Shown: in pieces, positions 28,646-47,375 of the stretch
Layout: every line of letters starts with the position of its first letter
Numbering within the stretch: position 1 is the first letter of the stretch
Source of the DNA: Haliotis rufescens
Taxonomy: Eukaryota
Direction: 5' to 3'
Length of the DNA: 64,000 nucleotides
Assembly (NCBI RefSeq): GCF_023055435.1
Contig: NW_025963813.1
Location: 1,984,001 to 2,048,000 of the forward strand
Made by a program: the position numbers and the translations under genes
The notes under the pieces: model-generated
The model's input: only the letters and a program-made list of their open reading frames with translations
What the model was told of the DNA's origin: nothing
Database searches by the model: none

Positions 28646-28932
28646 TTATGTACACTTATGAATCGCGCATTGTTCCCATCCCTGCTCATAGGCTAGGTAG
28701 CACCACAGATAACCGGATGGCAGAATGTTGCCTCCAGAAGGGTCACGGCAGTAGTTGGCGGCGCCAGCGTAGCCGAGGTTTTGTGCACCGTTGGTGATGT
28801 CGAAGTAGTTGCGGAAGTAGGCGTGATTGTTCGGGGACGTGCTTGACCAGGACTGACATGTTTTTCCGCTTGCGGTTACAGATTTTGTACCACTGTAGAC
28901 TGCTGTTCTCCCTTGCTTGGTGTAACAGTCAG
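28646..28932 (-). CDS. Single-kringle secreted protein, copy 1, exon 2 (kringle domain + stop); absent from the ORF track
   Basis: Acceptor ttttcttcacag, phase 1. Encodes (T)DCYTKQGRTAVYSGTKSVTASGKTCQSWSSTSPNNHAYFRNYFDITNGAQNLGYAGAANYCRDPSGGNILPSGYLWCYLAYEQGWEQCAIHKCT*. Six Cys and the kringle motifs SGxxCQxW, NYCRxP, WCY and WxxC. AATAAA at 28614-28619. Confidence 0.92.
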
Positions 28933-29819
28933 CTGTGAAGAAAATGTCAGTATTAGAAACAGTCCTTTATACAGATATGATTCATACTTTCTTGATGCGG
29001 TGTGTCATTGATTGAAGGGGGCATTGAATTGTTTTTTCTGTTATATCAGGCTTGTCATGTTGGCTGATGGAACAATTAACAGCCTTAGGCGTTTTCAACT
29101 TTGGTAAAACCCATTGTACATATACATTGCTGGCAAACGACGATCATGGGATCCTGGCGCGCCTAAGGGACGCAACTCTGCACATCGAAAACATTGTAGT
29201 TGGCAAGGAAGTAGGACAAGTTTTAATATACTTAGTCTTGTTTGCAAAATGTTCAGAGGAAAAGTGGGTTTCTGGGTGCTTTCCCTAAATCCTTAAATCG
29301 AGCGACTTGGCAGTAATGTGATATCTTTCATACAGCAATGTGGCGAGTGAGTAAATGATTATGGTTTTACGCCGGTGTTAGCAATATTTCAGTCGTATCT
29401 AAGCAGGACACAGCAGACATGTCACCAGAGATGGGTGATATCTTTCACGAAAAGATAAGACTGTCTCACAACAAAGTATGACAAGAAAGAAAAAATATTC
29501 AGTTCAGTTTATTGTTTTTTCAAGGCCATATGACCATATATACATGTTTATCATTCAGTTATACTACATTGCACATTTCCGTTCTAATGTTAAATACAAC
29601 ATACATATATTTTGACATATGAAATATATTCTGAAGTATTTTACAATTGATTATCGGCATCATATCGTGGGCTCGGTTGTTTGTTTAAACTGTTCAATGA
29701 GTACGTGCATGCGTATACAGAGGCCATACAATACAAACGTGATTTTCATCTTCAACATATTTACAGTGCGAGCAGAGAGAGTCTTCATCACCTACAGTAC
29801 ATTCACCTTTAATACGTTT

Positions 29820-30480
29820 TGAACACCAAAGGTGTTATATCCACTTCAAAATTTTAACCAGTCTTTCTGTACTTTAGTACATTTATATGTTGGACATACG
29901 ATTCAAACTTAAGTTCTGATTTTATGGTTGAATCAAAAATAAGTCATCTTTTATCTCTGAGACGTGAATGCCAGTTTTGTTCAGCACAATCAAGGATTCG
30001 TTGTTTCAGAACAAAGGTAAACGTTTCCTCAGTACCAACTCCCTTGGGTATCCAAACATGCCCGAAGCCATAACTTAACAGCAACTTTCTGATATGAGAT
30101 GCCCAATTCAAATATTTCCTTTCACAGGTATCATATATCATTCGAAAACACTTGTGCGGATGTCAATATGTGGGCAAGGATGAAACACGTAACCAATATT
30201 TGATACAAATGACATAACAATTTGTATAGAGTGGATATCTGCCACACTCACCATATGCAACAGCACTTGGCAAGGAATAACTTGTATTTAAAACATTTAC
30301 AATTTTCTATGTACAATTTCTATATTTTCCTCTTTGGGTGTATCCCTACAGCTCATTACCATTCAACAATATCGGGGCTATTTTTGTGTCAAACAGTTGA
30401 AAGGCTTAATTAACAGATATATAGTATTTACGCACAAACGTTTTGACGGTATATTGTGCTTCACTTGCCTGCTCTGCGAG
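29820..30480 (-). mobile_element. Decayed LINE ORF2 C-terminal fragment (L2/CR1-like) in the intron of kringle copy 1
   Basis: NWASHIRKLLLSYGFGHVW...LKQRILDCAEQNW is typical of the post-RT region. Confidence 0.7.
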
Positions 30481-30937
30481 GGTATAACAAGCTGTAGTCC
30501 AAATCAGCTTTGGAGTTATCATTCGACCAAGATATAGACTAAGATTCGACCAGGAGCTAACAGTCTCAAGTGGTACATTATAATATTCGATCTTTCGTAT
30601 CTAGAGAGTATAATGACTCCGAGCTGACCAGTCCTTGTTTCAGCCTCTAAATGTCGAGCGCCAGACAGGGTAACAACAAGTACTATCTTTTAACGCCTTT
30701 TGGTATGTCACGGCCGGGGATCGAACCCAGGACCTTCCGCTCTCCGGACTACTATTGATCTAATTACCAGCCACTCAAATAGAGGTAAATGTATTGTTTG
30801 GAAAAAGATGTAATGAACTTTCTCACGATTATCGCTTCTCTCTCTCATTTGTAATTTACGGAAAGCTTTGAAACAATTGTACACACATATTCTATACAGA
30901 CTATATATTAGTCCACAGACTTAAGAGAATCACTCAC

Positions 30938-30998
30938 TATTGCATGCTGCCAGTGTTGAAAGAACTGCTACGATGGCGAGGAGCAGGAGACGAGCCAT
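30938..30998 (-). CDS. Single-kringle protein, copy 1, exon 1 (signal peptide MARLLLLAIVAVLSTLAACN)
   Basis: caacATGG start context, 61 nt, donor gtgagt in phase 1 matching exon 2. Spliced product is 115 aa. Confidence 0.9.
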
Positions 30999-31200
30999 GT
31001 TGCTTGCTGTACAGTTGAGACCGACTGGTCCTTACAACGGCGTAGGTACGACACACGTCGTGACATACACGGACAACTGATGACGTGGGTGATGATATTG
31101 CAATTTTAAATGAAATTCCCATTAGCCTCTCTGCCATGCGTGACAGATGTGAGGCGAACGTTATTGTCAAATTATCATGAAAGAGTCTTTGTCTGATGTA
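30999..31200 (-). promoter_or_regulatory. Conserved 5'UTR and proximal promoter of kringle copy 1
   Basis: Block shared with the other three copies. Inr-like TCAGTT near 31075-31080, TTTAAAA about 30 nt upstream of it, kappaB-like GGGAATTTCA at 31111-31120. Confidence 0.55.
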
Positions 31201-44687: not shown

Positions 44688-45906
44688 GTTGCTGTGCAGC
44701 TGAGACCGACTGGTTGTTGCAACGGAGAAGGTACTACACACGTCGTGGTAGACAGTCAAATGTTGACGTGGATGGCGCGATTGCAATTTTAAATGAAATC
44801 CATATTGACCTTTCTGCCATGCGTGACAGATGTGAGGCCAACGTAATTGTCAAATTCTCCTGAAAGAGTCTTTGTTAGAGTAAATAGGGATTAGACGTAA
44901 TCCATTTAGAATATTCTCCGTGCATCTTTAGACAATGGGGCAGCTGTGACGAGATGTTTGAGTGATTGGAATAAAATTACGTATGAACTGCAGAGCTACA
45001 GATAAGCAGCGTATTTGCGTAAAATACCCCCCCCCCATAAAAATAATAATAATCAAAACCCAATTACTCTCAATTAACTTGCGTGCAGAAACGCATGCAT
45101 TAAATGAAAAACTCAAATATATAACAGCACGTGTAAATACTCATTGAGGGTTTGTTCAGCACGAAACACAATCAAGCCTATATATTTAGAACAGTTATAT
45201 ACATCTAAAAACATTATTTCATTTTTTTAAATCTTAAAATGTTCACCAAATTTAGGAAAAACCCAATAGAGTGATGAATAGATGAGTGAAAAAAATATTG
45301 GTTTACCAATGAAAAATATAATAACCCAATTAAAATAGAAACCTTAGAGTAAAAACTCAATTGCTCTAAAAGTTATCTGGAGCTTGGATGAACGCAATAG
45401 ATAACCAGAGAATGATTGGCATTGTTGTCAACACATTATATATTAACATTCCCCGTTTGAAATATATTTTGTGGATAGTAATATTTTGTTAATGAACACA
45501 ACAGTCAGCACGATAGTGTCTGCTGCTGATATTATTCCTATTCCGTCTTGAAATAGGACCAAGTTAATTTGGGTTGAATTGGTTCATTTAGTAAACGTTG
45601 TATGAGACAAACTAGTATTGGTTGCATTGATACATACAGATCTGTGGCACTTGTTAATCCAACGGACTCACACACTCTACACCTTGTCCTTCTTCTTACC
45701 AGGCAGCGCTGGAGGTCCAGGAGCCGTATCGTGTCGGGTTCATGTCAGTTTGTACACATTTGAGACTCGTTCCACACGTGATTTAATTTGGGAAAAATAA
45801 TATATACAATATCAATTAATATTCCCGTAATATTAATTGGCCTAAAATAATGTGTGGAACACATAGTCTAGAGTCTATACACAGTTTTATGAAATAATTA
45901 ATTTCA

Positions 45907-46142
45907 GATGAGAAGGTAGACACAATTTTATGGATAACAACTTCTTTTATACTGTAAAAAGCGACGTTTCAGTGTAGATCCTTAAAAAACAGTTGTCAAG
46001 TATACTGTTTGACAGTCTTGCTTAACAACGGCATAATGATCTATACCGAAACGTCGCTTTTTACAGTATTAAAGAAGTTGTTATCCATAAAATTGTGTCT
46101 ACCTTGTCATCCGTCAACTTCAAAGTAATGCTTATCAAACAA
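45907..46142. mobile_element. Palindromic (foldback) insertion with ~75-bp arms and a 10-bp TSD, Penelope-terminus-like
   Basis: 45907-45985 is the reverse complement of about 46033-46111. Direct repeat aatttcagat at 45900-45909 and 46143-46152. Confidence 0.7.
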
Positions 46143-46489
46143 AATTTCAGATTACTTTTGAAACAATGTCAGATTGTAACATATTTTCAAATATCGAAAG
46201 GCCAATGTTGAAGCATTGTCGATACAATGTATTTTAACGAATCAACCCCAGATCAACCAAATGCCAACACTGAAACACATTGTTCTTTCTTCACGTATGT
46301 TCTTTTGTAAATAATGACATTTATTTGTAACATTCATTCTTTAATCGTAGACCCGTGAAGATTCCGGGGTAGAATTTGTCCCCAGCAACCAATGCTCGAT
46401 GACTTCGTTGATGGCGTGTCACTATCGAGACTTTGTTTTCTAATTTTTCACTGCATTTAATTGTGTATGACTACGTTAGATCAGTTTTT

Positions 46490-46738
46490 TGTTTGTTGTT
46501 AACGCCGCACTCAGCAATATTCCAGCTATATGATGGCGGTCTGTAAATAATCGAGTCTGGACCAGACAATCCAGTGATTGACATCACGAGCATCGATCCA
46601 CGCAATTGGGATACAATGACATGCATCAACCAAGTCAGCGAGCCTGACCACCCGATCCTGTTAGTTGCCTATAACGACAAGCATAGTCGCCTTTTACGGC
46701 AAGCATGAGTTGCTGAAGACCTATTCTAGCCCGGATCT
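46490..46738 (-). mobile_element. Retroposon family D copy, near full length
   Basis: Family body from the (AAAC) tail to gaagacctattctagcccggatctt. Confidence 0.85.
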
Positions 46739-47082
46739 TTTGAAAGTTTTACTGAGGCCTTGACTGTTGTAACCATGATAAAACAAACAACACAGGAACC
46801 CGCCCCTCTTTTACAGCGTGACAGCTTGATGCTAGGGGAACTTCCACAAGTGGCATGGACTGGGAAAACATTATTTTAGTTTTAGGTTTTTACCAAAAAC
46901 ACTCCACGAAATGAAACATTTGCTGAGAAATAAATTATCCGTTTTTTCCCAGTAAATGGTATGTACCTTATAAAGATAGAAAAACAATATTTTCAATGTA
47001 TATTTATTATTGAAACACGAATCACGATATTCTTTTGATGATCAAAATTCACGATCTAAATCTTGTTTGAATATTCAAGATT

Positions 47083-47375
47083 TTACACTTGTGGACACTT
47101 TCGAACACTGCAAGGCCCCCATCCTGGCGCATCGGCAGTGTAGCACCACAGATACCCGGATGGCTGGAGGGCGCCTCCAGAAGGGTCCCGACAGTAGTTG
47201 GCGGCGCCTTGGTAGCCGAGGTCTGGTGCACCGTTGGTGATGTCGAAGCTCGCGCCGTCATAGCCATGATTGTTCGGGGAATTGCTTGACCAGGACTGAC
47301 ATGTTTTTCCGCTAGTGGTTTCAGATTTTGTACCACTGTAGACTGCTGTTCCATCCTGCTTGGTGTAACAGTCAG
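47083..47375 (-). CDS. Single-kringle secreted protein, copy 4, exon 2
   Basis: DCYTKQDGTAVYSGTKSETTSGKTCQSWSSNSPNNHGYDGASFDITNGAPDLGYQGAANYCRDPSGGALQPSGYLWCYTADAPGWGPCSVRKCPQV*. AATAAA at 47003-47008. Confidence 0.92.

Follow-up and report, generated by a model that had tools for sequence, protein, structure and literature searches.

The 64,000-nucleotide stretch of the Haliotis rufescens genome analysed here (assembly GCF_023055435.1, contig NW_025963813.1, positions 1,984,001 to 2,048,000 of the forward strand; hereafter the window) carries on its minus strand, at 28646-50706, a tandem array of four two-exon genes, K1 to K4. Each of them encodes one kringle domain, and together they are not one multi-kringle gene. 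The array ends at 50706, 3.3 kb past the span of a preliminary description of this DNA (end 47375), which had read the kringles as a diversifying recognition scaffold with a fixed framework and three hypervariable loops. We consider it likely that the loop pattern reflects an inherited framework, gene conversion and weak constraint, rather than proven diversifying selection.

Results

Structure and transcription of the four genes

Motif scans and six-frame translation of the window located four kringle exons, all on the minus strand. In each gene a signal exon of 61 nt, encoding MARLLLLA..LA(A/S)CN and ending in a phase-1 GT donor, lies 0.6-3.3 kb upstream of its own kringle exon. All four kringle exons start at a phase-1 acceptor that reads TTCTTCACAG followed by CT, also written TTTTCTTCACAG followed by CT. 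The signal-peptide exon of K1 (30938-30998) runs from its ATG through MARLLLLAIVAVLSTLAACN plus 1 nt to a GT donor in phase 1; its second exon (28646-28932) holds the whole kringle, with an in-frame TAA right after HKCT and an AATAAA at 28614-28619. K2 is composed of a signal exon at 39106-39166 and an exon with kringle and stop at 38193-38479, downstream of which no canonical AATAAA was found. The K2 intron contains a truncated duplicate of the intron end and of the first ~32 nt of the kringle exon (38765-38877, minus strand), a possible decoy acceptor. In K3 the signal exon occupies 44627-44687, and the second exon, at 41462-41846, is coding over 41566-41846 and continues as 3' untranslated region (UTR) to ~41462, with AATAAA at 41480-41485. 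In K4 the signal exon, at 50646-50706, lies outside the span of the preliminary description; the kringle exon with its 3' UTR occupies 46997-47375 (coding 47083-47375; AATAAA 47003-47008). The C-terminal ends of K1 to K4 are HKCT, HKCT, HKCP and RKCPQV, each closed by an in-frame stop, and none of the four kringle exons has a GT donor able to carry the frame onward. The promoter and upstream regions are conserved among the four genes. Local tblastn and blastn searches revealed no further kringle or signal exon in the window, the fragment at 38765-38877 being the only extra copy.

Joining the exons by script yields frames of 115, 115, 113 and 117 amino acids for K1, K2, K3 and K4, which are identical, residue for residue, to the database proteins P0001, P0154, P0003 and P0158. 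These entries bear the names 'putative apolipoprotein(a)-like protein 2' or 'plasminogen-like' of Haliotis rufescens, so that public annotation already includes the four genes, with automatically assigned names. The database and fold searches reported below used single exons or database proteins as queries rather than the joined gene models. The predicted mature proteins are ~10 kDa in size and contain six cysteines and no N-glycosylation sequon; their predicted isoelectric points (pI) are 8.2, 6.0, 5.4 and 4.9. No description of stand-alone kringle proteins of abalone was found in the main-text literature on kringles in abalone, gastropods, molluscs and invertebrates, supplements, which may list them, being outside the search; nor are they described in passages of PMC7333891, PMC4581086 and PMC3517415.

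K3 and K4 are transcribed and spliced as modelled. Contigs of four sequencing runs that we guessed to be RNA were mapped on 41400-47399, an interval that covers K3 and exon 2 of K4; two of the K3 contig sets come from other species. Contigs of runs X13 and X16 carry the joint 41846/44627, which skips 2780 nt with CT..AC on the plus strand (GT..AG on the minus strand) and is exactly the predicted K3 intron. In a contig of run X12, exon 2 of K4 is joined at its first position (47375) to an exon 1 that aligns on K3 exon 1 but carries a 4-nt insertion and one mismatch. Because these match the difference expected of K4 exon 1, we take this exon to be of the K4 type. Over 46997-47345 an X12 contig has 0 differences from the window. 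The K3 contigs end ~20 nt past the AATAAA, and the word depths of the spliced K3 and K4 contigs are ~50-400. A 10-nt unit spanning the coding end of K3 is tandemly repeated just past the stop (41569-41600); X16, which carries another organism label, has one unit fewer, leaving the protein unchanged.

The kringle domain and its variable columns

All four exons match PF00051 (Pfam) at 46.6-52.5 bits, above its curated cut-off of 34.3 bits (E-values 6e-14 to 4e-12). Among the 92 columns from the first to the last cysteine, 57 are invariant in the four copies and 35 vary. The invariant runs of at least four residues are exactly CYTKQ, TAVYSGT, SGKTCQSWS, PNNH, FDITNGA, NYCRDPS and LWCY, and all invariant blocks and variable strings quoted in the preliminary description are present in the exons. 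The variable columns are clustered (33 runs vs 44.4 +/- 4.5 in 100,000 shuffles, P = 0.008): 18 of the 24 columns in the three named loops (A, B and C, following PNNH, RDPS and WCY) vary, compared with 17 of 68 elsewhere. The framework with hypervariable loops is in this sense real, but three loops are an undercount, as at least five further variable blocks (17 columns) occur, at kringle positions 6-7, 29-31, 49-50, 54-57 and 88-90.

The loop lengths had also been described as non-canonical, which is borne out by the Pfam match, the phmmer alignment and the cysteine counts. The cysteine spacing is 22-35-15-10-4 in K1, as first given, and likewise in K2 and K4; K3 departs from it (22-33-15-10-4). 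The phmmer alignment implies 20-27-11-11-4 for plasminogen kringle 1, so that the second plasminogen interval, initially quoted as 28, should be 27. Relative to this kringle the K1 spacing contains 13 extra residues, listed as +2, +8, +4 and -1. The six cysteines align to those of plasminogen kringles and are kept in 9 of 9 proteins from three species; in canonical kringles they pair 1-6, 2-4 and 3-5. An AlphaFold2 (AF2) model has an overall predicted local distance difference test score (pLDDT) of 76.5, and the best Foldseek matches in the PDB are apolipoprotein(a) (apo(a)) and plasminogen kringles, with probability 1.0 and a template modelling (TM) score on target of 0.6-0.73.

A family of long kringles in Haliotis

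The long loops and the NYCRDPS motif are inherited family traits and are not peculiar to the array. The H. rufescens genome (1.33 Gb) contains 92 PF00051 matches, of which at least 25 are long kringles sharing the motifs TAVYSGT, F-x-[IV]-TNG, NYCRDPSGG and LWC. All of these lie on a single contig (C35), four of them in the window, 18 at 16.436-16.488 Mb and three near 32.8-32.9 Mb. The framework and loop lengths, described initially as a trait of these paralogues, are present in them but come from this wider set. A Thr-rich linker follows 9 of the 18 kringles at 16.436-16.488 Mb; the 18 long kringle exons of this cluster (16.43-16.49 Mb) belong to apparent mucin-like multi-kringle genes and are the likely source family of the array. 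In H. rubra, P0007 and P0008 each have several kringles and Thr-rich linkers in a mucin-like architecture. K1 to K4 form one clade with 100% bootstrap, and its sister group consists of four kringles of the 18-kringle cluster.

Kringles of the Haliotis multi-kringle Thr-rich proteins (P0007, P0008 and the C35 cluster) have the same long loops as those of the window, 56-74% identity to K1, similar cysteine spacing and a similar signal peptide. However, those proteins combine several kringles with poly-Thr linkers, whereas the genes in the window encode one kringle and no linker. The relatives of >50% identity that were looked up in a 50%-identity representative library are all from Haliotis (P0007, P0008, P0115) except for P0083 (52%), a kringle of canonical length listed under no source name. 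The family motifs are absent from all of seven other proteins with longish kringles.

The predicted ligand site

In the portion of PMC9736318 available, plasminogen kringle 1 is described as binding lysine analogues via Asp55/Asp57, Arg35/Arg71 and Tyr72. In the phmmer alignments of K1 the residues at Asp55 and Asp57 are Ser and Gly, the Asp-x-Asp of plasminogen kringles 1 and 4 being aligned to S-G-G, and all four copies carry S-G-G or S-S-G at this position. Position 35 of K1 is Ala when aligned to Arg35 of kringle 1 and Tyr when aligned to Lys35 of kringle 4; Gly is aligned to Arg71 and Trp to Tyr72. The Asp-x-Asp anionic centre is absent, as had been proposed, and the cationic centre is gone as well. 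Because both charged centres are missing, the alignment gives good support to the earlier prediction that the K1-K4 kringles would not bind lysine, or other omega-aminocarboxylates, in the canonical way.

The aromatic residues of the groove persist: all four copies have LWCY and GW, which align to Trp62, Tyr/Phe64 and Trp/Tyr72, LWCY falling on the Trp62-Cys-Tyr/Phe64 stretch. In the alignment-based mapping position 35 falls in loop A and positions 71-72 in loop C, and loop B begins at 56-57. Each loop holds one aligned lysine-site position, which agrees, as far as alignment goes, with the suggestion that the variable segments lie on the ligand face. Plasminogen kringles 1 and 4 and the apo(a) KIV kringles share the fold and the six-cysteine framework with the abalone kringles, are their best sequence and structure matches and have the groove aromatics in common with them. 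The abalone kringles differ in the 13 extra residues, spread over four loops, and in the exchange of Asp55/Asp57 and Arg/Lys35/Arg71 for S/G and A/Y/G, and their genes have no protease domain or neighbouring kringle in the polypeptide.

Gene conversion within the kringle exon

Over the 120 nt of intron that precede exon 2, K2 is close to K3 (9 differences in 115 aligned positions) and more distant from K1 (49 in 117). Within the 3' portion of the exon (columns 280-400) the relationship is reversed, with 2 differences in 120 positions between K1 and K2 and 45 in 120 between K2 and K3. K2 exon 2 is a chimera, with a K3-like intron upstream and a K1-like 3' half of the exon. The synonymous divergence (dS) among the four genes is 0.06-0.19 in codons 1-50, where the sister kringles stand at 0.6-1.3 from them. 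For codons 51-92 the divergence among the four is 0.40-0.97 (K1-K2 0.04), as large as to the sister group. Gene conversion in the kringle exon is evident from these comparisons. No donor for the very divergent 3' half of K3 was found among 25 family members, none being closer than 68%.

Selection on the loops

The whole-kringle ratio of nonsynonymous to synonymous rates (omega) is 0.54-0.73 in pairwise comparisons, with 1.05 for K1-K2. The clade of K1 to K4 has an omega of 0.54 against 0.21 in the background of the Haliotis long-kringle family (likelihood-ratio test statistic (LRT) 18.2, p 2e-5), which is still below 1 (p 0.007). For the three loops, the five pairs with synonymous differences (K1-K2 has zero) give Nei-Gojobori (NG86) omega values of 0.58-1.40, the highest being that of K3-K4, and dS is raised in the loops too. 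The maximum likelihood (ML) omega of the loops is 1.07, indistinguishable from 1 (LRT 0.03), and that of the rest of the kringle 0.46; with four sequences, the difference between loops and rest is not significant (p 0.11). Adding the four sister kringles (8 sequences) brings the loop omega to 0.51, below 1 (p 0.011). For codons 1-50 the ML estimate of omega is 1.32, which does not depart significantly from 1 (p 0.51); for codons 51-92, the half that contains loops B and C, it is 0.33 and below 1 (p 0.003). A loop omega well below 1, named beforehand as a result that would refute diversification, is not seen within the four-gene clade, where the value is about 1; the values with relatives included (0.51) and for the 3' half of the exon (0.33) go half of the way towards it.

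The preliminary description took the three loops to be a ligand site under diversifying selection, forming a variable scaffold for the recognition of targets such as microbes or glycans. We regard this as improbable, while several results speak for it and weigh against our own reading. Model M2a is preferred over M1a with 4 sequences (LRT 16.9, p 2e-4, 38% of sites at omega 3.6), with 8 (LRT 7.1, p 0.028) and with 25 (LRT 19.0, p 7e-5), and the comparison of M7 with M8 that had been proposed as a check is significant with 25 (LRT 16.7, p 2e-4). The 25-sequence fit assigns a posterior of at least 0.99 to two sites family-wide, kringle positions 19 and 82, the latter in loop C. In codons 1-50 omega exceeds 1 in 4 of 6 pairs. 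The K3-K4 loop omega of 1.40, the ML loop omega of 1.07, a clade omega 2.6 times the family background, the alignment of the loops to lysine-site positions and the pI range of 4.9 to 8.2 point the same way. In the K3 coding exon the four RNA runs show only two differences from the window, both nonsynonymous and none synonymous: 41799 G>T (Q37K) in all four runs and 41582 G>A (A109V) in three. The same positions (15, 19, 30, 37, 48-50, 57, 66 and 86) have changed repeatedly in separate pairs of H. rufescens and H. cracherodii orthologues. Our reading is weakened further by the AF2 model, which is poor over residues 61-80 (pLDDT 51-57), and by the codon models themselves. These were fitted with our own, home-written code of the Goldman-Yang (GY94) type, with F3x4 frequencies and the IQ-TREE topology. 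Branch lengths were fixed at M0 proportions in the 25-sequence site-class fits and in all fits with synonymous-rate classes, and every fit assumes one tree although recombination is evident.

Against diversifying selection stands, above all, the loss of the site-model signal when the synonymous rate is allowed to vary. With two synonymous-rate classes the gain of M2a is gone with 4 sequences (LRT 1.30, p 0.52), 8 sequences (LRT 3.17, p 0.21) and 25 sequences (LRT 2.17, p 0.34). We attribute the signal obtained without such variation to the exon being a gene-conversion mosaic, and recombination of this kind inflates such tests. The loop omega does not exceed 1 and is significantly below it with 8 sequences, dS is raised in the loops as well, loops B and C lie in the half-exon of omega 0.33, and position 19 is outside the three loops. 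The case for a diversifying recognition scaffold is in this way not robust, in spite of the class of omega above 1 in the standard models; given the significance of those models, some positive selection may nonetheless have acted.

Differences between species, taken from orthologue proteins, are no denser in the loops either. The four proteins of H. rufescens differ from their H. cracherodii counterparts by 3, 14, 9 and 13 residues, in total 39 of 460 (8.5%). Of these differences, 8 lie among the 84 signal-peptide residues, 9 among the 96 of the three loops and 22 among the remaining 280, with no concentration in the loops. This divergence cannot be called exceptional, because a neighbouring gene with chitin-binding domains is only 87% identical between the two species.

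Assembly gaps and neighbouring sequence

Two assembly gaps (N), at 32245-32385 and 35322-35490, are intergenic and fall between K1 exon 1 (end 30998) and K2 exon 2 (start 38193). They are crossed by no exon or intron, and no remnant of a kringle or of exon 1 was seen beside either of them. That the gaps break up a gene is ruled out, since no gene model touches them.

The neighbouring gene is an open minus-strand frame (20194-20934) that encodes three Peritrophin-A (CBM_14) domains, of the chitin-binding kind, connected by Pro/Thr/Gly linkers. Its H. cracherodii orthologue, named 'chondroitin proteoglycan 2-like' (87% identity), shares a contig with the kringle orthologues of that species, and the neighbourhood is therefore syntenic. 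A minisatellite of ~2 kb at 25285-27357, with a unit of 33 nt (11 codons), forms open frames in two overlapping registers of the minus strand and lies where the GC skew is strong; it is probably a non-coding repeat and not a gene. Between K2 and K3 lies a tandem array with a 93-bp period and ~9 copies that are 98-99% identical (40384-41221). A dispersed repeat of ~200 bp occurs, for example, at 28096-28286, 37790-38015, 46485-46739 and 48941-49207 and at more than 15 other places, its copies being 78-94% identical. It is very abundant in the RNA-like contig sets, where the summed word depth exceeds 10^5 at 46400-46800. Short open frames at 34026-34892 on the minus strand resemble what we take to be remnants of mariner/Tc1-type transposases, and the piece at 34211-34477 has no Pfam match.

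Discussion

The array at 28646-50706 looks to have arisen as a pared-down offshoot of the mucin-like multi-kringle relatives, reduced to a signal exon and one terminal kringle exon. The pattern of conserved blocks and variable loops probably has three sources. The first would be the framework inherited from the family. The second would be gene conversion, which would have homogenised exon 1, the promoter and the kringle exon's 5' half across the four genes, and the entire exon between K1 and K2. The third would be an older divergence of the 3' half, with loops B and C, under purifying selection, accompanied by near-neutral change at tolerant positions of the surface loops.

A comparable organisation is found in tandemly duplicated families of small, disulfide-rich secreted proteins such as snake-venom Kunitz/BPTI, which likewise combine a conserved signal peptide and cysteine scaffold with variable loops between the cysteines in a tandem array, and for which site-specific positive selection is reported, according to the portion of PMC5107962 available. 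The abalone signal differs from it in not being robust to synonymous-rate variation or recombination.

Loss of constraint offers another account of the changes, in which the four genes would be functionless duplicates drifting on the way to pseudogenes. It could draw on the omega of ~1.3 in codons 1-50, on K2 with its lack of a canonical AATAAA and the decoy exon fragment in its intron, and on substitutions in other species. The H. cracherodii K2 orthologue has T45P and L96P inside 'invariant' blocks, and in the one H. rubra protein neither the aligned groove Trp (W106S) nor the Tyr of NYC is retained. We nevertheless think this account very improbable: all four frames are intact, the six cysteines persist in every one of the nine proteins, omega is significantly below 1 in codons 51-92 and clade-wide, K3 and K4 yield spliced RNA contigs, and the promoter regions are conserved. 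Hardly any credence can be given to the four exons being parts of one multi-kringle gene of the plasminogen/apo(a) type, which their common strand, their phase-1 acceptors typical of kringle exons and their database names might suggest, since an in-frame stop ends each exon before any usable GT donor, every kringle exon has its own ATG, signal exon and conserved upstream region, the RNA contigs run from exon 1 straight into the kringle exon of the same gene and end past the poly(A) signal, and none of the 8 longer open reading frames (ORFs) scanned, of 21 ORFs of at least 130 amino acids, matched a protease or PAN domain. The in-frame stops, separate signal exons and RNA joints led us to reject it. 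In the plasminogen/apo(a) architecture several kringles are followed by a trypsin-like protease domain, and K1 to K4, with a stop after a single kringle, do not fit it.

We favour, then, tandem single-kringle genes shaped by inheritance, gene conversion and weak constraint. On sequence grounds, their products are predicted to be secreted binding modules that would use the retained aromatic groove (the residues aligned to Trp62, Tyr64 and Trp72). As loop chemistry and net charge differ among the paralogues, they probably differ in predicted ligand or affinity. The most likely setting, judged by analogy with the mucin-like relatives, would be extracellular mucus or body fluid. A further, rather doubtful possibility is that the four proteins constitute a soluble 10-kDa recognition repertoire, in which conversion would keep the scaffold and signal peptide uniform while selection would preserve or drive a few loop differences around an aromatic, non-lysine groove, giving each paralogue its own ligand. 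If true, such a repertoire would parallel, with kringles as its basis, other variable binding families of invertebrates.

The locus provides a compact worked example of how gene conversion within one exon can mimic a 'fixed framework plus hypervariable loops' and yield false-positive site-model tests. Kringles have almost always been studied as lysine-binding modules of large vertebrate proteins. The long-loop kringle described here is a lineage-specific mollusc form used in two ways, in mucin-like multi-kringle proteins and in predicted free-standing secreted proteins of 10 kDa. With the charged lysine site gone and the aromatic groove kept, a ligand of these proteins, if found, would widen the known range of kringle recognition.

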